Assembly (NCBI GenBank): GCA_000320545.1
Contig: ADNK01001076.1
Span: 1 to 64,000 of the forward strand
DNA from: Bigelowiella natans CCMP2755
Lineage: Eukaryota > Protista > Cercozoa
Direction: 5' to 3'
DNA length: 64,000 nucleotides
Part shown: piece by piece, positions 953 to 62,937 of the stretch
How the letters are laid out: each line of letters begins with the position of its first letter
How positions within the stretch are numbered: position 1 is the first letter of the stretch
Position numbers and translations under genes: made by a program
The notes under the pieces: generated by a model
The model's input: the letters and a program-made list of their open reading frames with translations, nothing else
What the model was told of the DNA's origin: nothing
Databases searched by the model: none

Positions 953-3705
953 ATGTTGCAGCGAGCAAAGCAGCCACGATCAAGGTCAGGGAGCATAAAG
1001 TTGGGCAAGAGCTCAGGCCCTAGAATTGTTACAAACATTCGGACAGCCACTAAACAGCAAATCATTACAAGGTAGAAATTGCTCCACTTTGCACTGGAAC
1101 TTGATTAATCGCATTATCATTTTCAGGCACAACTTCTATATGTATGAGTTTCGGACTAAATACTGCCAGGAATTTCCCCATTTCATGTGCAAACAGGTGC
1201 GATCCATCTACCCTTTTTTCCATATTCTCAAAACTAATTTCGCATTTTGTAGGCGAAACCGTACTCTTGCGTCAAGGCGCATTATGAAAATAATATTCGT
1301 CGACGACCGAGACTGGTGAATGGCAAGTTCAATTTTACGGATAAGCTGTGCACGTTTGCCTCAATCACTGACTGCCCGAATAGCATGAACTGTGCCTTCT
1401 CTCACAGGGTATTCTCAAGGATCTCATGATTCAGAAGATGAGTTACTTATCTGATATATATTTTTTAAAAGGTTCAAAAAGAGCACATCTATCATCCTTC
1501 TCTGTACAAAACGCAGCTCTGTGAATCTCCCTTGACTGAGGTAAACAGGACTTGCCGTACTTTCAATCCGTTCCCATTTTGAAGAATATTGGCGATTCAA
1601 TTATGTCTCTTCTCGCACAGGATGGTATTTGCGCTGAATTTGGGATCCACTGCGCAAAGGCCCATGGCATAAAAGATCTCAGACAGCCTCAATATGAGCC
1701 GGACGACCCTCGTGCTCTTGTCCATCGCTCGGGGAGCACCAGTCCCAACTGTTCATCGGATAGTAGTGCAGACTCTAAATCTGGGGAACATAGCTTCCAG
1801 ATCTCTCGTACTTTCGACGAGAATACCAAAGAGCTTAAGATTCATGCCGACTACATGTATAAATTCAGAGTTACTCGGTGCCTTGCGCATACGACGGGCC
1901 AGTGTCAGTTCGATGGTAACACGTGTTTTCACTCGCATGGGGGAGAGAATTCGTCGCGCAGGATCCCAGAGCTAATCAGTGGCAAATTCAATTACTTACC
2001 AATCCGTTGTCAATATATGCTTAAGGGGAAAACATGTCATCATGCACAAAATTGTCGTTTTGCGCATTCGAAAGAGGAAGTTATTTACCACCCTTCCAAG
2101 TACAAAACCCAACTCTGTCCCCACAGATTGAAGAAGGTTCAGGTCATCCGGCAGCCTGGTGGCGTTCCAAACCAAGCAAATGAAAGCAACTCTATGGACG
2201 GAGGAAGTCCATCAGCAGACGGCAAAACAACAGAGATGTGGGTTTGCGCAGGCTATGGGATTCACTGTGCCAAAGCTCATGGAAAGGATGACCTGCGCTT
2301 GCCTGTTTTTGAGAATTGTAGCAAGGAAATGCCGGTGAAGCCCATGCCGCCTCCCTCCCATCAGCACTACAGATCAGTAGCACATCCTTCTGAGAACAAC
2401 AGCAACAACGCTATTTTCAGGCCAACAGGAATGTCTCATCGAAGAAATAGCCACAACGGTGGTGGTAGCGATATGATCCCATCATCAAACAACACAATAT
2501 ACCGATCAATGAACATGAGGACAATGAGCGACAAAATCTCAACTAAGCACCGTCACCATTCAGATGAGGTGCATCACCCTCATCCGCATCGTGCTCATCG
2601 CCATCCCTCCTCTGCTTCCAATTTTGCATGGAGCTCCTCTGCTACGTTGTCCCATTCATCAAATTCGGTTATTGGTGGAGACAGGCGCCATCATCATCAT
2701 CATCATCATCATCGCCATCATCATTACCAGCAGCAGCATCGTCATCATCATCAGCAGCAGCAGCACCACCATCAAAGGATTAATAGCTCGCCATTTCGTC
2801 AAACTAGCTGGAGCATGCACACCAAGCCACACTCTGCCCCTAATTCCCACGGGAGTGTTGGTCATCACAACTTGACCAGCAGACATCAAGAAACCAGATC
2901 TGTGTATCTATCCCGAGGAGGGGGGGAAGGAGGGAGTGGTGGTACACGTGAATCTCTCGGTAATCCAAGCAGTTATGGCACAAAGAGCCACAGTTATGGA
3001 CACCAACATCATCGTCATCCTCACCTCAACCGTCACCATGATTCCCCTTCTGGATCTCCGAGACTCCATTCCTTCGCAGGGGGGGGTAGCGGCAGTAGCG
3101 GTGGTGTTGGCATCAAGCCGCGCTCCGAATCTGCCGATGATCATCCTGGATCCTCCTCCTCGCCATTTTTATCGTTCCGAGGTTCTAAAAGCACTCTTCT
3201 TCATCATACAGGGGGCAAGAGCATTATGATTGATGACGCCGCTGATGACATGCGAGCCATTTCTTCGCATCTTTTCAACCTAGGAATTTCCCCCCCCTCT
3301 TCCAAGTCGTCGTCTAGGGATCACCAAGGTGGTGGTGGTGGTGGTGGGTTTTGTGTGGATAAATTCCAACAGCAGCAGCAGAAGAAGAAGAAGAAGGAAT
3401 ACAATAAACCGATTGGAGCTGACAGACAGCACCATGCCTCTGCTCCGAATTCGTCATCGTCCTCATCTGCTTCTTCCTCCTCACAGCCTAGTCACAATCA
3501 TCAGTATTTTACTACGCCTTCTTCTTCTTCTTCTTCGTCTTCGTCTTCTTCCACTACCACTACTACTACTATTACTACTCCTGCTACTAGTACTACTTCG
3601 AGTGGTGCTACTACTACTACCGCTCCTGTCACTAATACTTCTGGTGGATCGGGAAAACTTGCAACTTATCTTCCCTCCTTCTTGGTTAGCTTTGTAAAGG
3701 AGTAA
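953..3705 (+). CDS. Unkempt-like tandem CCCH zinc-finger RNA-binding protein (6 fingers, His/Ser-rich tail)
   Basis: Spliced frame from ATG953: ...HNFYMYEFRTKYCQEFPHFMCKQ|AKPYSCVKAH..RRRP..CAFSH|..YHPSLYKTQLC..|CAEFGIHCAKAHG..DLRQP, followed by a second triplet (YMYKFRVTRC..CFHSH, CRFAH, YHPSKYKTQLC..HCAKAHG). Confidence 0.85.
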
Positions 3706-5239: not shown

Positions 5240-6015
5240 AAAAGTCATGAAATGCAATGTGAGCTACGCATGATGTGCTCAGGTGACGTGAAATGCAGCA
5301 AGCATTGATGCTTTACATTTCTCGCAGAGAAGTCCAATGTCAGCATGCGCCATTGCTAGATTGTGCATTTCTAGACTTCCATCTATCTATCTACACATGA
5401 ACAAAATGTGAGACGGATGTAATGAAATGTTTAAATTTTTTTAATGGTGCTCATTGTTGAGACACCCATTTGATGAATGCACACGCATGTGGCACTCTAT
5501 AGCATTGTGCAACACATGGCTAGAGCTGTAACGCACGCGCAAGCATGTAGCAACGTGCAGCACCATCACGCGTAGCGTATAGTCATGTTAGTGTGTTACT
5601 TTGTTGATTTGCATGCGATGCGCTGTTGCGAACAACGTGGCTTGCACTTACACAGCAAATACAATTTTGATCAAGCCATATAGTGCATCGCATGACGTAC
5701 TCTAGCACTGCATGCTAGCATGGCTACTGGCTAGCTGAACGAACGAACAAGCTGTGACAAAGCTTAAGCAGGCCTAGCGAGCGCTGGTGCGCTGGTGCGT
5801 GCGCTCTAGCTACGCGTACGACGTAGTTGCGACGACACTATACACTAGCACATGTGTGCGCATACGACCAATATACTGATCTAGTCATGAGTGCCATCAC
5901 TGTAACAACTGGACAAATACGAGCGTGCGCTGCGCTACGTGTTTTAGTTGTCATGTTAGTGGGCCACAACTGCGTAATGTGCGTGCACAGAATGCGCTGT
6001 GATCGATATTATTCG
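5240..6015. other. Convergent intergenic tract rich in CTAG/TGCA/CATG/AGCT
   Basis: Composition shifts between two facing stop codons; contains one copy of the bipartite motif. Confidence 0.7.
5407..5455 (+). repeat. Dispersed bipartite motif, copy 1
   Basis: TGTGAGACGGATGTAATGAAA...TTTTTTAATGGTGC. Confidence 0.75.
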
Positions 6016-6018
6016 TGA

Positions 6019-6896
6019 TCATTGAAATTTGAAGCCCTTCTCAACAACGTCATGAATTCCCTTTTTTCTATCTTCTCTATCCTTGTCAAAGGACGCCTTG
6101 AGTGCCTTCTCCAGCTTTGTTGCTTTTGGCTTCTTCGGATCAAGCTTCGGATTGTATGTATTCCTGTGAGCCCATCCCCTTAATTTACTGTGATCCCCCT
6201 TGAGGCCCTTCCTATTACCCGTCGACAACGGGGGAAGAATGTCTAGGAATCCTCCCTTAAATCTTTGGCTCTGTGCTTCCTCTTTCGAACGTGCTATTAA
6301 TTCTTCAGTCCGTGTTAGTCTCTTTCTTTTTCGTGCCTGAGAATGTACATCGCCATATCAAACTTTCTAGTTTCACCTCGGATTTCTTAAAATACCTCTG
6401 TATTATCATCATTCCTTGAACGTTTCCTTTTTAATTTCTTCTCCAACTTTTTTGCCTTTTTCTTTCTCTTCTTTTTTTTTCCCCTCTTCTTCTTCTTCTT
6501 CTTCTAAATGCCCGAAGCATCAGTAAAATAATAGGGTTACTGGCTGAAGTTGTACTCTTTTACAATCAAAAAGATACTGAAAGGTTCTAGCTCTGATCAA
6601 TACCATTCGGTGTGTTCGAATGAAACGTTTGCATCTATCGAGGTTAAATTAACTATTCTAACTCTTGGTGTGAAATACGTAGCGGTATCACCCGCATCCT
6701 CCACACCTAAATGCACTAATCTAGTATCTAACAGCAATTTAGCTTATGGCATAAACCTGTTTATGAAATTTCGAGGAAAATTTACCTTACTTTTCTTTTT
6801 CTTCTTTGAAGTCTTCTCCTCTTCTGAATCTTCGCTACTGCTGTCATCATGGGGATCGAATTCATCACTGTTGGATTCGTGCGAGCTGCTTGACAT
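6019..6896 (-). CDS. Lys-rich hypothetical (possibly nucleolar) protein, 3 exons
   Basis: MSSSSHESNSDEFDPHDD..KKKKKSK|KKKKKKRGKKKKRKKKAKKLEKKLKRKRSRNDDNTE|ARKRKRLTRTEELIARSKEEAQSQRFKGGFLDILPPLSTG..GFKFQ*, all phase-0 GT-AG introns. Confidence 0.65.
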
Positions 6897-7661
6897 GTTC
6901 TGCAGATCTACACGCCCTTAGGAATAGGATTGCCCAACCGTCTCCTGAGCCTCAATCACTTGTCTCTGTGTCTGCTGGCCGCTCTGTTCACCCCCACCTT
7001 CCCATGCACGATGGATTGTGCTCGCTATTCTCATTCCGCTTTCCTTTCTTTTTCTCAAGGAATCCCCTGTATTTCGATGGCGATGGATGTTTTTTTGATG
7101 TCGCGCAATAGAAACCCAGGCGGTGAGGTTGTTCAGACCCTTCGGGTTGCCACGCCTGCACACCTCTTCTTCTTCATGTTCATCACTTTCTTCCTGGAGC
7201 CCGGGGCCTACAGCTGCCAAGCCCTTCCGCTGAGACACGGTCCGCGCACACAGGAGTTTCCTAGTGCCTCCCACGACTAGACGGGCATTCCTTGATGAGG
7301 AAATGAACGACATGGCATCCGCCGGCCGACAATTGCCGGCCGACAGCCATGCAAGGGTTTCTCACTCCCCGGAAATCCCGGCAGGGATGCGCGGACTTTC
7401 AAGGTGTGCCTCATTTCGGCGGCAGCCGGAAATTTTTTTAGGATTTGAACTGAAAACGAAGATTTCCTTGTGAAAAATCGAATTTCATGTGTGAACATCC
7501 ATGGATTTCTTTGGCCGAAATTGACGTGAAATCTCTGGTGACGCTCGCAACTTTTTTTCACACGAGCTCATTGGGGCCAACCCCAGCACACCACACCAAC
7601 CTTCCTTGCCCTCTTTCCCTCATGTCAAATTCAGAGAATTTTGTGTTGAAGAACGGGAGTC

Positions 7662-7960
7662 ATGAGGGTGCATCATGAACACAACGGGGTCGCAGTTGCA
7701 CACGACAGTGTGATTTCTCTGCCAAAGTGCGGTTGGGGTCATGTGACGAGGAGGCTGGACGGGAAGACATGTCCTTGGGGAGAACTTGAGGCAACGTTCT
7801 CGGTTGCCAAGGACGAATGGCGTCACATCAGGAGAAGCTGCAAGGAGGATGGTTTGAAGGATGTGTGCCAGTCATGCCTGTGTGCTGACCACACAAGATG
7901 CATGTGCAGATCCGGAACACACAACCCTCCAGAGCTGGCATCGTGGTGTTTGATTGCACG
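7662..7960 (+). pseudogene. Hypermutated coding fragment carried inside the hAT element
   Basis: About 100 open codons with no Tyr but many His/Cys at Tyr-like positions (MRVHHEHNGVAVAHDSVISLPKCGWGHVTRRLDGKTCPWGELEATF...). Confidence 0.45.
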
Positions 7961-7962
7961 TT

Positions 7963-8019
7963 CACACACAACACACACAACACACACACACACACACACA
8001 CACATGCACACACACACAT

Positions 8020-8053
<34 letters not shown>

Positions 8054-8064
8054 CGTGCACACAC

Positions 8065-8098
<34 letters not shown>

Positions 8099-8118
8099 CA
8101 CACACACACGCACACACC
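7963..8118. repeat. Imperfect (CA)n microsatellite inside the hAT element
   Basis: CACACA runs interrupted by CATG and CAAC. Confidence 0.9.
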
Positions 8119-8599
8119 ATGCACGTGTGCATCGTGGCTCACCTTTTCTTCGTTCATCACTCGCTGTCGAATTTGAACACGTCATTTTGAAACTGTGAAT
8201 CATTTCAGAAGAAATGTGCCAATTTTGACCAGTGAAAAATGAACTGGTGAGCCCGCTGCGCCTGCCACAAACTGCAAAAAATTGTGCCTGCGCGCGCATT
8301 TTTGCTCCGGAAATGTTCAATTTTGTGATTTGAGTTGTGAAAATTTGAGAGAAGAAAGATCTTTTTGCACCTGTCACTTTGGCATGGTTTTTGTGGAAGG
8401 AGGCGAAGTCAGGGGCGTTTCCGGAGCACTCAAAGTTTGTGCCCTGCCCATTTTCGATTTTCCAAAAAACATTTTTTTTTGCTTCCCTGAGGGTCCTAGG
8501 GCCCTCACATGGTCCACAGGGGTCATGTGTGAAAGTTTGGAGCAGAATCCGCGCATGCCTGCCGGGATTCCAGGGGAGTGAGAAACCCTTGCAGCCATG

Positions 8600-9300
8600 C
8601 CTAGATGCTAGCATGTTCACAAGCATGCCAGCAGTCACAGCTAGTAGGTGTGACAAAAACGTGAACAAGCAAGCAATCTTTGCTGATTGTGATCTGTTGA
8701 TCTGTTCAAGTGTTGTGCAACGTGCATGCATCTGAAATGCATCTCTGCTAGCTAGCTAGCTCTGCCTGGACTGCACATGCGGATCCAGCTGGACTAGCTA
8801 GCAGGGCTGGTAGCAATCGACAGCATCTCTAGATCTAGATGTCTAGACAAGACATGCTCATTTTCGCTAGTTCGACTAGCATCGTGCGCCACAGCTCCAG
8901 AGCTAGCTAGCTGGACAGTGCGGCATCGTTCATGGCAATGCGAGCCAACAACAAACAACACAACCAGACAATCTAGCAATCGGCATGGATGCATGCACTA
9001 CAGCACTGTTGTTTTGTCTAGTGTTGGTCTTCCAGCCTTGGTTCATGATTTGTTTTCCGCTTGACAAATGACAAAGAGCTCACTGTGCACTCAAACAGCG
9101 CTAGAGAGAGCGAAGTAACGCTTGAATCGCATGTTGATGTACGCGCGATGGCACCGCATAATTTCGAATTCAAGGCTTGTTCTGCTAGCAATCGCTTAAG
9201 AATCGCTCTGGTGTTGTACTTTGCCATTTCGATGTTCACATATCTCGATCGAGCTTGCTAAATGTGTTGCAAAACACCATTCGCTTGGTTCAAGATGTTC
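8600..9300. other. TA-depleted, CTAG-rich tract between the hAT element and the 3' end of the bZIP gene
   Basis: Hand count over 8600-9110: 18 TA in CTAG and 3 others (GTAG, GTAG, CTAC). Confidence 0.85.
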
Positions 9301-21930: not shown

Positions 21931-22371
21931 TAGCTATGACGATGCCGGTACGATACTAGCGCTAGCTAGCTAGAGCGTACCGACCATCCGACCATGCATG
22001 CATGCCTAGATATATGTGCAGCGTGCATTGATGGGACACAGCCTAGACAGCACGAGGCGCCATCTGGCAAGCCATGTAGCGGGCTCGATCGAGTGCACCT
22101 CTAGACCTTGCTAGCTTGTTTGCTCGCATGCAGGTATAGTCAGCGTCTTCACCTTGGATATGGCCTTGCGAGCAAATTCACAATACAAAAGGGACTCATC
22201 ACACACAAGTAGCTCAGAGCTCGCATGCAATGCGCACCTAGTAGACACTAGGACACCCTGCTAGCCTGCGCCGCTCAAGTGCACACAAGCTAGCAAGCTA
22301 GCAAGTGCCAAAGTGCAGTGAATTGTTGTCGCGCTACATCTAGCTAGCTAGACATGTGCTGTATGTTCTCC

Positions 22372-26619: not shown

Positions 26620-27775
26620 AACATGAGAGTTTAGATGACACACGTTTTAGGCTACGATGGAATGATCGATATATGCATAGAAACTTCGACATGAACAGCC
26701 ATACGATCAGCATCACGCGTGCATCTGGACATGCGTGACTTTGCCATTGCATTGACCATGCTAGCTCTAGAGCTGCACGCTAGCTACTGTTGCATGCAAC
26801 ATGGGCGTGATGGCCTTTCTAGCTTTGTGCTATCGTTGACCTTTTGAATTGCGCGTCAATTGTTGCGTGCTCTTCTAGCTCTTGCGCCACAGCCACACCT
26901 AGACAAGACATGTGCCCGTGTGATCTAGTGATGCTCGTTTGCATCGTTAGCATCGCTGCTAGCAGATCGAGCGTCATGATGATCTAGTGATGGTGCGATA
27001 CGATAAACCAATAAGAGACTCTAGCTAGCGTAGCTAGCTCTGGATGTATGCCGAATTTTAACTTTGCATGTAGCCGATCTAGCGATCGATGTGAGTCGTC
27101 ATGTTCTACTAGTTTACAATATACTATTCTAGCTAGCTAGGCTAATATGCGTTGTGATGCAAGTGATGACCTAGTCCAATGATGCAAGCAACAGCGCGAG
27201 AATGTGTGTACATGCGCTGTACACTAGCACAAGTACATCTGTCCGCTGTAGTTGCATCTGGATTTTGTGTGCATATGCGTGCCACGTGTAACATGGCTAG
27301 ATGGCCTAATAGCATATATCTCTAAATGTGCATTACTAGATTACATCTAGTACATGGCTAACGCAGCCCGAGAGGCACACGTCTACTAGAAGATGTATGC
27401 AGCTAATTTTATAATTTAATCAGAGAAACATAAGGACAATAGACACTAATTACGTTCAGAGATTTTGCGCTAACTTTCGCAATATTTTATCGTTATCATC
27501 GTGCGTCACACAAAACGCAAGCAGTCATTGCCATAATGCATATATCTAAAATAACAATGCGTGGGGACGTTGTATCACCGCAATCCATTGACGTTAGGAC
27601 TGCTTGCAGACCTATCGAAAGATGCCTGACTACGACTGCGACTTTTATTTGCGCTCCGCTCGGCCTACAAATTGATGAAAATGGCCCTGTCAGCAAGACG
27701 GTAGCATGTATAATACAGCAAACCTGCTAAGGCATCAGCTTCTCGTTATAAGACAATAAGGAACAATATGAAAAT
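26620..27775. other. Convergent intergenic CTAG-rich tract
   Basis: CTAGCTCTAG, CTAGCTAGCG, CATG and TGCA are dense between facing stop codons. Confidence 0.8.
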
Positions 27776-30700: not shown

Positions 30701-32006
30701 ACTATCAATGTGTGGCTGGCTGCTGTGTCGCAGATCAACAATCAAGCAATGATGAGCCAGTAACACACAGAAGTTTGGGCATGTCTCATCATCCACAACA
30801 CTTAAGAGTAGCACACACCTCTCTTTTGGAATCCAGCAGGCTGATCTGCTTCTCTGCTTTGTCGGTTTGTCCATTTCCCTTCTTCTTCTTTTTCTTCTTC
30901 TTCCGCTGCGGTCGTTGAAAGAGCTCATCAAACTCACTGAGATCAAACTTGACATTGTTCAGCGTGTTCTCCCAGAATGTGCCCTCGATCTCTTTCAGTG
31001 CCACGACCTCCCAGTGCAGCTTCTTGAGCGGTTTTCCCGGCTTTGACAGGGTCTCCCGTGGCTTCAACTGAGGGGTAACACCGAACATACCAGGGGGAGG
31101 AGGAACTCCCCCCATCATGGGAGGGGGCGGTATCCCACCACTCATGCCAGGAGGGGGCGGTATACCACCACTCATGCCAGGAGGGGGGGGGATGCCTCCT
31201 CCCATCGTAGGGGGCGGTGGTATTCCACCACTCATGCCAGGAGGGGGGGGGATGCCTCCTCCCATCGTAGGGGGCGGTGGTATTCCACCACTCATGCCAG
31301 GAGGGGGGGGGATACCTCCTCCTCCTCCCATTGTGGGGGAGGGTGTAATCCCACCATTCATTCCGGGAGGATGCGGGATGGCGGGCATCCCGCCCGAGGA
31401 TGGGGAAGCTCCGTGGATGGGAAGAGAAGGAGGAGGAGGAGGAGAAGAAGAAGATGATGATGATTTGGGGGGGGCTGATGATGTCGTTGAGGATGATGTA
31501 GGAAGAGGAGTGGTAGTGCTGTGCTTAGCAAGGGAGGATGCTGGTGCCGTGGAGGAGGAGGAGGAGGAGGAGGAGGAGGAGGAGGAGGGAGGGGGGAGGG
31601 GGATGCTTGACGGAGCTTATCTTTACGGTCGTTATCTTCTGATCGTGAGGGGTGTTCGGGGTGACCTGGTGATGAAATAGTATAAGCACTGCTGCTGATG
31701 ATGATGGTGATGGTGGTGATGGTGATGATGAAAATCAGAAATAAAAGGAAGAACCGCACAAATTGACTGCTGAGAAACAAGCCCGCATGTAAACACGAAA
31801 ACACGAAAACACGAAAACACGAAAACACACACACACACACACACACACACTACTACTACTACTTCATTACCTTAATATGCATCGAAGAGTTTGATAATGT
31901 CGATTCCTTATTATCATCATCATTCGCATTATCCTCCGTTGAAGATGCGGCGGACGGAGATCGGGGTGCATTTTGCTTCTTTCTCTTTGTGCTATTATTG
32001 CTATTG

Positions 32007-40642: not shown

Positions 40643-41638
40643 TTAAGAGTCTTTTTGTTTTTTTTTCCTTGAAGCTAAGCTGAACCTATTGTTTCTTTTT
40701 TTCCCAGCGTGAGATTCTTTCCCATTTTCGTGGTTATTCAACGATGTTGTGTCTTCATTACTTTCTTGACTTTTTCCACCGGGTGCTGATGAAGACTTGG
40801 ATTTATCGGAAGAAGAAATTTCGTTGCTTATCCTTTTGTTAACCTTGACATCCCCATCATCATCCTTACTATCAGTGCTACTATTTTTATTCTCAGCAAT
40901 CACCTCCTTATTTGACATATCGGATCCCTCCCCATCCCCCCCTCCGGTGCTTCCCTCACCAGTTCCGCCTGTCTCCGAAGTTGTTCCTACTACCAGAGAC
41001 GGAGCCGTACCACAAGCGTGCTTTGCGGTCCATTGTTTTGCTACTCGCTCAAACTCCGCTCGATCATTCGTGTACTGTTCAGTGATGTCGGCCATAAGCC
41101 CGTCGTTAGCGTTCGGAGTTGCCATCAAAAGCCGGACAGTCGCCAACAGAGTACAGAAATTAATCGATGGCGACCAGCTACCTTTCGGCGGCATTTTGAG
41201 GGTGTCGAGGCATATTCTTCCCCCTGAGTCGATGTTTGGGTGGTAGATTGGAGTGACGAATTTTAGCTTTGGCGGCTCGAATGGATATCGATCTGGAACC
41301 TCAAGTCTCAGCTTGAACGTTCCTTTTGCATAGGGGCTATCTTCTGGTCCGGTAATCTGCGCTTCGAACATGTCGAGCCTATCTTCCATCGGCCACGCAC
41401 AAACTCCGTGGGGAGGGTCTCGATCCAGCAGCATAATTTCTCTCTTCTACGGGTAGAAAATGGCAGGTGAGAGCCTTCCTTCAAGGATAGATTCGAACTT
41501 TTCAAGCATCACAGTTAGGGAAAGGATAAGAAAGAAGTAAATAATACTCAAAGACTCTCATTCATGTTTTTATCTCTTCGACTACAATGCTCTCGGAGGA
41601 AAACAGCTTCCCGCCATTGCTACCATTCGGCCCTTCAT
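40643..41638 (-). CDS. UBE2T: Ubiquitin-conjugating enzyme E2, UBE2T/UBC37-like
   Basis: MKGRM|KREIMLLDRDPPHGVCAW..YPFEPPKLKFVTPIYHPNIDSGGRICLDTLKMPPKGSWSPSIN..PNANDGLMADI, with a long tail ending in a basic NLS. An upstream in-frame ATG at 41695 is possible. Confidence 0.9.
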
Positions 41639-50859: not shown

Positions 50860-52450
50860 ATCAGGTCGAGGGTTGATGAGTGAGGAGCTTATTGCAAGAC
50901 CCATCGAAACTGTGAGCTGCGATCCAGCGATCATCGTATCGTGAGATAAAAGGTCCATTCAAGGCCGTGGTTTACACCAGCAGTCAGGCTGGTGTAAAAA
51001 GGAGCACAGGACTCGTCGGTCGGGAGGATGATAGTAGATTTGCAACACCATATTGCTTATTAACTTATATTCGCATGGCATTGCTGTATTTTACATCACA
51101 AGCACTCTGTCATGTCTACCTAGGCATGGCCACATCTTGACATGCCGACTTACTAGATTATCCACACGAGCAATTTGATGTTTTAGCACGCGGGGCATCG
51201 TTTCGCGCCTCGCGCGACTACAGCAACTGACTGGATGCATGCGTCGTCATGTTATCGAACATGGTCACACAAGTCTTCTAGGCTTTGCTAGTTTGCGCTA
51301 CTAGACCAGCAAAGCTTTGTCATCATCTTGCAAAGTCTGCACGATGCAATCTCTAGAATCTAGCAATGCCTTGCGTCACATTTCGCTCTGCTCACACCAG
51401 CTAGCTAGCACAGCACACCAGAGCAACGCGATGCAATGCAGAATGCCCTCCAACCCTCTCACACGGAAAAACTAGCTAGAACTGGCGCCCTGACACTCAA
51501 GCTAGCACACAACTGCATCAATCCCGGTAACGAGTGGGTTTTGAACAAACTGTGCTTTGCGCGTGCGGCCTGGCGCGCTCAATCGTTGCAATTGGACATT
51601 GGAAGCACACTGGAGCCTGTTTGAGGTTCAAATTTGATTTTTTTTTCGAATTTCAGCTTGAAAACTTCATTTTTCAACGCCTGGCAGCGGGCGAAAATTG
51701 AAAAATTCTTACCACTTTTGAACACGCTAGCGCATTTGCATTTGCGTGCCACAAGTTTTGCAAGCTCATGAGGGTGTGTGCACACTAGCTTCATGGACGT
51801 GCGAAGTTTCAGCACACGCACGCAAAAAGCATGCACCTGGGCGCACACAAACGCGCAAATGTGCACTCAATGACTCTCAATTAAAGCTTCATGCCATTCG
51901 TTACACATTTGACACAGTTGTGCAAGCACAATCACAACATCCACGATCAGATGACTCGATGATCTCGAGCTGCAGCAGCAGAGACTTTGTGAAATGGCAT
52001 TGTTTGCACAATCGTCGGGCAGGCTAGCTAGCTTCAGAGCTAGCACTGGAGCGAAATGCACAATGAAGGTCACATGTTCGTTCCATGCTAGCATGCATGC
52101 ACAACGCATGCTTGCTAGCATGATTCGAAGTGTTCGATCGCAATTCGAAGACAAGTCGCATGTGCAGACACTTCGGCTGCATTTTTGTCTCTTGCTGGTT
52201 GCTTGTCGCAGCTTGGCAAATGCCCACTTGTCGCTGCTGCTGCAACCACACATTCCGCGGCTTGCGGATGGAAAGCATTACAACACTGTCTAGCTGTGTG
52301 CATGGGCTCATGCTAGCATGTGGAAACCAATGAAAGCTTGCTGATAACTTGGCATTTGTTGCTTGGCAAACTTGAGTTGGCTTAAATCCAGTTATGAAAG
52401 TAGATTTACTAGCCACACATTGATGACTGAGCGACTTGAACGAAAGTCGT
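50860..52450. other. Convergent intergenic tract, strongly TA-depleted, containing a probable transposon relic (about 51440-51900)
   Basis: Hand count over 51360-52320: 15 TA in CTAG and 5 elsewhere. The A/T-run-rich block at 51600-51720 resembles in style the subterminal DNA of the hAT element. No TIR or TSD resolved. Confidence 0.7.
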
Positions 52451-60929: not shown

Positions 60930-61925
60930 ACTTAAAGTGTGCTATGCGAAGGATACATTAAAGAAGCAGAAGTATTGTTCAAAAATTCATTTTTAGATTC
61001 CCAAGACTGGTGTTGTCAAGGCTAGTACAAGCACAATGCAATATCGATCGACGAATGAATGGTCCATGCTGAGCCACACTAGCACACACGACAACAAATT
61101 TGTGCATCGCAATAATGCAAGCGTCGGTCGACAGACGAAGCAATTATTGCCATGCTATGCAGTGTATAGGTATGGGATTTCATTTAATATTTCGGTGACG
61201 ACGCCTGCGACGTCATGTTATATTGTTCAATGTCCACCCCGCCTAGCTAGCATGTAGCGTGACGCAGGCTATAGCAGGTGTAACGTGCTCGATTACACTA
61301 GTACAATGCTAGAATGCGCAGCATATTCAGATGTAGCAATAGTAGCCATGCTAGCATGTCAGATGTGTATACACATCTAGATTGATAAACAATTGTATAA
61401 ACTAGTGGTTACCCACACCATCTGTCTACTGTCTATGCTACTACTCATAGCAAGCTATCGCATCTATACGCAATGTAACGCAAGCACAACTAGACAACCC
61501 CGCTTCGACTCATGCACACACTCACATCTTTAGACATGTGTAGATCTCTAGATCTAGCTAGCTAGAGATCTAGAGATAGCTAGATAGATGCGATGCAGTT
61601 AATTATGTAGACAGATCCAGAGCTGATCGACAGTGCTAGAGTGCCATTCTAGCTAGCCTCTAGGGCCGGCTCTAGCAAGCTAGTGCTGGCATAAACTAGA
61701 TAAGACTGCATGCTCGGTGCACGGGCGAGCTCTAGAGCTGTCAGTGCATGTTGCGCTACACAACTAGTAGCACTCGCTAATATGGGTGCACGTTCATGCT
61801 TTGCTATGATATCGCATGATATACATATCATTTGCTGTGCTGCTATTATGTAACAATGAAGCGTATACCATCTAGAGTTTAAGCTGAGGACTCATAAAAA
61901 TTAAGATTTTTATACAATACACTCC
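60930..61925. other. Convergent intergenic CTAG-rich tract
   Basis: For example TAGATCTCTAGATCTAGCTAGCTAGAGATCTAGAGATAGCTAG, between facing stop codons. Confidence 0.85.
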
Positions 61926-61927
61926 AC

Positions 61928-62937
61928 CTAGAAAGCTTGACCCATAGGACGATTTGTTTTAGTTTTGATTCTTCTTGGTGCCTTTTTGTCCATAGCAATA
62001 AGAGTAGGCTTTGGAGGAAGACGAGCGCGGATTCCAAGACGCATGACAACATCCCGGAACTTTGTAGGATTTCGTTTGTAAAGGTCTACAAGGTTTTTCC
62101 GCCGTTGCTGAATTGCAATGACAAGACCGCGTCTAGTCGAATAGTCCTTGCGGTTTGTTGCCAGATGCTGGAAGGAAAAACAGTTTGATGAATTTCGGAA
62201 ACGAATTGGGTCAGCGTAAAATTTTATTACCTTTGTTAGGTGATACACCCGTTGAGTAGTTTTTGCAATTTGATACTCTGGAGAGCCTTTGTCATTCTCA
62301 TGACGCATATATTCTGCAAGCATATCCTCCTGAGACTCCGTGGGGGTTTCGCTTAGCAGATCGTCATCAGTAGCAGAGCCTAGCCAATCAGAGCCGGAAA
62401 CATCAACTGGTACCCATTCCGAAGGCGGGCGAAGGGGTTCACGTAGGATAGCAAAAAGACTGTCGTCATCAGTCTTCGACTCAGCGAATAGCTCTTCTGC
62501 TCCTGTGCTTTGCTGGCCCCCTTCCTCAGCGCAAATTCTGTTTTGCCTTTGGGGAGCAGACATACGGCCTATACGTCCAGTCATTTGCGGTGCAAGACGT
62601 GGAGCCTGGATATTAATAAGTTAAATTCAAATTTCGCATATTATCCAGTGAAGGAAACTAACCACAAAAGATCTTGCTGAAGAAGTACGGATCGCAGAGC
62701 CCACTAAAGGACTGAGTATATTGTGAAATCGATTTGAATGAAATGATTATCCGTATATTATACCAAGCTGAAACTCACAAGTTCATGGACATAAAAAATC
62801 GTCATGCAATATTGGGCAAAACACTAAAAGCAAATTGTCCACGTTCAATACATTTCGCTTCCAAACGACGACATACACGTAAATGTAAAAAGTTATTGGT
62901 ACACTCATTCATTGACGCGCGCGCGCGCGCTTGTGTG

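Follow-up and report, generated by a model that had tools for sequence, protein, structure and literature searches.

The window, by which we mean the whole 64,000-nt stretch of Bigelowiella natans DNA analysed here, carries a TA-poor hAT-like MITE (family 1) and a second MITE (family 2), which are listed with the features around them in Table 1. The bounds of the first element, as proposed in an earlier note on this DNA, proved correct, with terminal inverted repeat (TIR) arms of 44-46 nt that are 93 % complementary and an identical 8-bp TSD on either side. At least 13 copies of family 1, all TA-poor (0-9 TA per full copy), are present in the genome; among nine full copies, the 8-bp TSD is exact in six, near-exact in two and absent in one. 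A Pfam search inside the element returned no hAT transposase domain. Three PF05699 loci lie elsewhere in the genome, none of which adjoins the TIR pattern of the MITE, and comparison of the retrieved genome DNA revealed no sequence common to the MITE and these three hAT transposase loci. We read the long ORFs of the element as by-products, because loss of TA deletes TAA and TAG stops; the same stripping of stop codons creates long false ORFs in the B. natans genome. Some family 1 copies are transcribed and spliced: an RNA-like run over 7401-7633 returned family 1 transcripts from other copies, one of them with a 231-nt GT..AG skip.

Table 1. Coordinates of the features discussed in the text (positions in the window; a dot marks features without strand)
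Feature	Position	Strand	Remarks
Non-autonomous TIR element, hAT-like MITE (family 1)	7352..8591	.	1240 bp; 2 TA vs ~80 expected
Left TSD, 8 bp, CAGCCATG	7344..7351	+	Identical to right copy
Right TSD, 8 bp	8592..8599	+	Identical to left copy
Left terminal inverted repeat	7352..7395	+	5'-CAAGGG...
Right terminal inverted repeat	8548..8591	-	
TA-free core	7441..8496	.	Former TA sites recognisable from CA<>TG flips between copies, among them 7451, 7471, 7539, 7808, 8283, 8445
(CA)n tract with interspersed TG	7960..8120	.	Copy L008 has T at some tract positions
302-aa ORF	7823..8731	-	Zero Tyr; no Pfam match; judged spurious
ORF across element	7662-8198	+	No Pfam match; likewise judged spurious
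Left flank, single-copy, moderately TA-depleted	6927..7343	.	6 TA vs 20 expected; 5/6 xTAG or CTAy
Right flank, single-copy, TA-depleted	8592..9110	.	21 residual TA, 21/21 xTAG or CTAy, 18 CTAG
8-bp scar cluster	8597..8980	.	4-bp duplication around CTAG (8601, 8829, 8867, 8973) and around CCAG (8897, 8964)
First exon of spliced Lys-rich host gene	6786..7328	-	Likely long 5' UTR, ATG near 6896; overlaps depleted left flank
Host-gene intron, GT..AG	6504-6785	-	
Second MITE (family 2)	51508..51922	.	415 bp; unrelated to first; CAC...GTG ends, 2-bp TSD, at least 40 copies; independent test

Other host genes in the window, at 1552-3705 (+), 30789-31388 (-), 40643-41434 (-) and 61928-62584 (-), comprise an Unkempt-like CCCH zinc finger, a ubiquitin-conjugating enzyme and ribosomal S15, all recognised by Pfam, and a proline-rich formin-like exon recognised by eye.

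The observation from which the analysis started, namely that the element holds only two TA dinucleotides, was confirmed. The two are TTAG at 7439 and CTAG at 8497; the core between them, where 71 TA are expected (61 leaving out the CA tract), has none. The probability of finding none is ~4e-22 even after the expectation is scaled by the TA O/E of the window (0.81), and the resulting gap of 1058 bp is the longest TA-free gap in the window, the runner-up (267 bp) being about four times shorter. CA and TG are in excess in the depleted core (O/E 1.65-1.98) and CG is as common there as in the window overall (37 vs 34), as had also been remarked from the letters. The (CA)n tract is probably an erased (TA)n microsatellite. 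Depletion is wider than the element, covering approximately 6927-9110, and reaches ~424 bp (left) and ~523 bp (right) into single-copy DNA. Neither is the erasure an assembly or consensus artefact, because independent contigs give the same sequence and the same variants: in a comparison covering 6000-7950, which was picked to avoid the long CA tract, a contig from an independent 2025 DNA run was identical to the window over 6000-7403, and MITE-family contigs of that run showed matching TA/CA/TG variants at 7439/7440, 7451/7452 and 7693. The stretch is present in 14 DNA runs of 2025 from 12 studies, a pattern that would be expected of a mutation-accumulation series.

Alignment of copies revealed that former TA sites have turned independently into CA or TG in different copies. 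In family 1 (13 copies, CA tract left out), we counted 12-13 CA/TG columns, five CA/TA/TG columns and five TA/TG columns, these being columns in related copies and not independent events. CA<>TG pairs number 22, against eight for every other double transition combined, and seven of those eight are AC<>GT, which are likely by-products of adjacent flips. The second family, whose MITE is putatively CACTA/CMC-like, behaves in the same way: 20 aligned copies gave six CA/TA/TG columns, three CA/TA and one TA/TG, even within the TIR and the TSD, and copy L048 has a TSD that reads TG at one end and CA at the other, the outcome expected of a TA mutated after insertion. The three hAT transposase copies are likewise TA-erased; they are 87-90 % identical, any two of them being set apart by 20-43 CA/TG flips, one of them (L056) being fragmented and another (L054) retaining a 536-aa ORF with a single Tyr. 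A CA<>TG flip requires two neighbouring transitions unless both states derive from TA or from CG. Ancestry from CG is unlikely because, over both MITE families, three-state columns with TA (CA/TA/TG) outnumber those with CG (CA/CG/TG) 11 to four, and because the copies do not show more C>T change at CpG (11/129) than at CC/CT (22/267). The deamination of 5mC, dismissed in the earlier note, is indeed an inadequate explanation, and the CA<>TG flips and surviving TA columns bear out the change that the note had expected between family copies.

The process has, however, already been reported, and the erased MITE is a further example of it and not the new system that the earlier note had put forward. 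TpA>CpA/TpG hypermutation was measured in B. natans by mutation accumulation (Mettrop et al., bioRxiv 10.64898/2026.01.13.699255): in some of the lines, two viral inserts acquired A:T>G:C changes at TpA at ~1000 times the background rate, a 186-kb single-copy insert being the main target. The changes were de novo DNA mutations of either strand in vegetative single-cell lines, and a subset was Sanger-checked; low-TA CDS were enriched for transposon domains, one PF05699 hAT among them, and the authors proposed adenine deamination and kept one ADAT2 candidate (bioRxiv 10.64898/2026.01.13.699255). The preprint scanned CDS and 1-kb windows and is silent on CTAG, context, flanks and MITEs. Its text puts all GC-biased changes on TpA, while its Table S2 has four T>C in ATG/ATT; the same table has an unexplained strand skew, with 17 T>C at CTA against three A>G at TAG. 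Our literature search brought up no report of TpA hypermutation in protists other than this preprint. The genome carries one NCLDV capsid locus in a profile search, and for this 3.5-kb locus one scaffold_10 placement agrees with 3/3 listed mutations in site and third base, a weak fit (chance ~0.05).

The copy alignments and the de novo measurements together uphold the claim of a targeted conversion of TpA to CpA/TpG. An account without any mutator, which would invoke an assembly artefact, decay of CpG or selection against TA as an insertion target, could draw on the fact that CG>CA/TG also yields CA<>TG flips and on the four CA/CG/TG columns, but it is hardly credible in view of the 11 CA/TA/TG columns, a CpG that is not hypermutable, the agreement of independent contigs and de novo events that were measured and in part Sanger-checked. 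We consider it highly probable that the MITE is a dead non-autonomous hAT-like element and that the TpA-specific A:T>G:C hypermutation of B. natans would have saturated it together with unique flanks of ~0.4 and 0.5 kb.

The residual TA sites point to a context rule. In a hand count of Table S2, G stands 3' of the mutated A in 20/206 TpA changes, against 21.9 % of available sites as estimated from a 3.5-kb insert sample (OR 0.38, p 5e-4), so that a 3' G slows change ~2.6-fold. In depleted islands, the O/E of CTAG is 1.19 and that of the remaining contexts 0.00-0.09; CTAG lasts longest because an A with a 3' G is mutated less. Among non-TA sites, A>G change affected 18/100 AAT/CAT sites vs 26/539 elsewhere (p 2e-5), a preference matching the contexts of the four T>C entries outside TpA in Table S2, and AAT and CAT are thus weaker secondary targets. 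Strand outcomes in the alignments, each based on few independent sites, are mixed: xTAG sites (CA 31/TG 15) fit the 3' G rule, whereas CTAy sites (CA 20/TG 17) do not support it, and D-TA-H leans to TG. The rule as a whole (5' T required, 3' G slowing, AAT/CAT secondary) provides a fingerprint for testing candidate deaminases and argues against an ADAR-like enzyme.

Protection accounts for only part of the abundance of CTAG, to which insertion scars add. CTAG lies between exact 4-bp direct repeats in 20 % of cases (171/860), compared with 1.1 % for all 4-mers and 6.5-6.9 % for CCAG/CTGG. In both MITE alignments, the scars are copy-specific 8-bp insertions consisting of a 4-bp duplication plus CTAG, and roughly every second CTAG in a depleted island is such a scar. 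They are probably excision footprints of a transposon, which would add fresh CTAG that decays slowly to CCAG/CTGG; a search of the retrieved genome DNA for an intact transposon with a 4-bp TSD and CT...AG termini was negative. Further scar clusters occur at 5356, 5715, 22101-22298, 26767-27336, 52088-52313 and 61079-61732, also in non-erased DNA, and the duplications tend to M-N-N-K. The 3' G effect, the AAT/CAT secondary targets and the CTAG insertion scars are additions beyond the preprint.

Which base is attacked is a separate question. The earlier note had written the change as T>C or, equivalently, A>G; the direction from TA to CA/TG was right, but sequence alone cannot assign the attack to A or to T. 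The route that it had brought up, in which a TET/JBP-type enzyme oxidises the T of TpA and the product (5hmU or 5fU) pairs wrongly with G to give T>C, would leave an identical sequence outcome, the context rule then being that a 5' C protects T. Polynucleotide adenosine deaminases give transitions only, with a strict 5' T and weaker C/A. The spectrum observed here, purely of transitions, with a strict 5' T as seen from A and weaker C/A, is of this adenosine-deaminase-like kind, and thymine oxidation gained no support and appears rather unlikely; a PF12851 (TET/JBP) profile search of the genome gave no match, with an equally silent control that makes it uninformative, as did a search with PF05063 (MT-A70). 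Error-prone gap filling in depleted domains by a Pol eta-like polymerase, with its WA>WG signature, could account for the AAT secondary target, and Pol eta favours TA over AA. Table S2, in which 206/210 de novo transitions are at TpA and one is at AA, with zero transversions (bioRxiv 10.64898/2026.01.13.699255), is far stricter than Pol eta, and this origin seems very unlikely.

On the deamination reading, a TadA/ADAT2-fold enzyme would turn the A of TpA into inosine within the DNA, and replication would then fix the change as G. Such adenine deamination is the likeliest of the chemistries considered, and we hold it to be about as probable as its negation. Transposase genes lose Tyr codons through the TpA changes (Tyr to His/Cys) and are thereby inactivated. 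The genome has six TadA/MafB19-like matches (contigs C980, C3623, C3286, C3588, C570 and C1679), some of which may be nucleotide deaminases, and one PF02137 (ADAT1/ADAR domain) locus, which is probably ADAT1. It also encodes a full-length, bacterial-type C5 DNA methylase domain (G000:C1391:110667-111599, E 2e-76; the frame spans 649 aa without interruption), with four partial loci besides.

Averaged over copies, depletion fades within ~1 kb of the element ends and is often one-sided or absent; one-sided depletion fits landing in existing islands equally well as spreading, which we count against our explanation of a saturated element and flanks. In family 2, TA retention tracks the TA content of the flanks (rho 0.66, p 0.0014), more TA being kept in TA-rich surroundings, whereas family 1 has no such correlation (rho -0.02), a further point against. 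The earlier note had proposed a repeat-directed 'reverse RIP'. In a homology-triggered form of it, pairing of duplicated DNA would recruit a mutator that leaks into the flanks, as RIP does. Although every repeat family examined is depleted and mean depletion weakens with distance from element ends, this repeat-directed mode is doubtful and, in our judgement, unlikely: the 186-kb target of the preprint is single-copy, the flanks here are unique, family 2 copies that are equally repeated differ by neighbourhood and hypermutation occurs in vegetative single-cell lines. We favour a regional process over homology sensing because of the depleted unique flanks, the family 2 trend and the single-copy viral target. 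It is reasonably probable that the mutator would be aimed at silenced chromatin domains and not by DNA-DNA pairing of repeats, and such aiming would account for the damage to unique flanks. In B. natans, TEs and repressed genes share a single H3K9me3/H3K27me3 state (bioRxiv 10.1101/2025.03.17.643675), which is a plausible guide.

The depleted left flank also includes host sequence. An RNA-like contig over the first exon (6786-7328) has zero differences from the genome, and the change therefore resides in DNA; the exon is transcribed yet TA-depleted, which we likewise count against the explanation of a saturated element and flanks. The RNA contig of this gene (6000-7328, -) stops 16 bp from the TSD, and a marine metatranscriptome contig matches 6109-6338 with three differences.

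Taken as a whole, the data allow the tentative suggestion, which we consider possible and no better than that, that B. natans has a natural adenine base editor of DNA with a TadA/ADAT2 fold and the motif T-A-H (weaker C/A-A-T), which chromatin would guide to silenced domains and which would spread from a fresh transposon into unique host DNA, here the 5' exon of a gene that is expressed. Of this, the hypermutation itself is published; the enzyme, its guidance and the spreading are the unpublished parts. If true, the occurrence of such an editor in the nucleus of a eukaryote would be of consequence for base-editing tools as well as for genome defence.

Among known systems, the element resembles the hAT superfamily in the 8-bp TSD of most full copies, the CA...TG ends and the short TIRs, and differs in being without a transposase of its own. 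Fungal RIP shares with the present case dense dinucleotide-specific transitions on both strands of transposons that reach into flanks, but runs the opposite way (CpA>TpA), TA being lost and CA/TG gained here. RIP requires duplication and a sexual cycle. Here, by contrast, unique flanks are depleted, the target in the preprint is single-copy and the lines are vegetative. TadA/ADAT2-type deaminases and ADAR have in common with this process A>G change with a 5' T/U. ADAR prefers 5'UAG on dsRNA (PMC10661471), whereas a 3' G is disfavoured here (OR 0.38). The closest likeness is to the TpA hypermutation of B. natans itself, with TpA loss, CpA and TpG gain, and both CA and TG arising from one former TA; that work concerned viral inserts, whereas the present case is a non-coding, near-saturated MITE with copy-level evidence, a 3' G effect, AAT/CAT targets and depleted unique flanks, and widens the known range of the algal mutator, beyond viral inserts, to cut-and-paste transposons with the unique DNA beside them.
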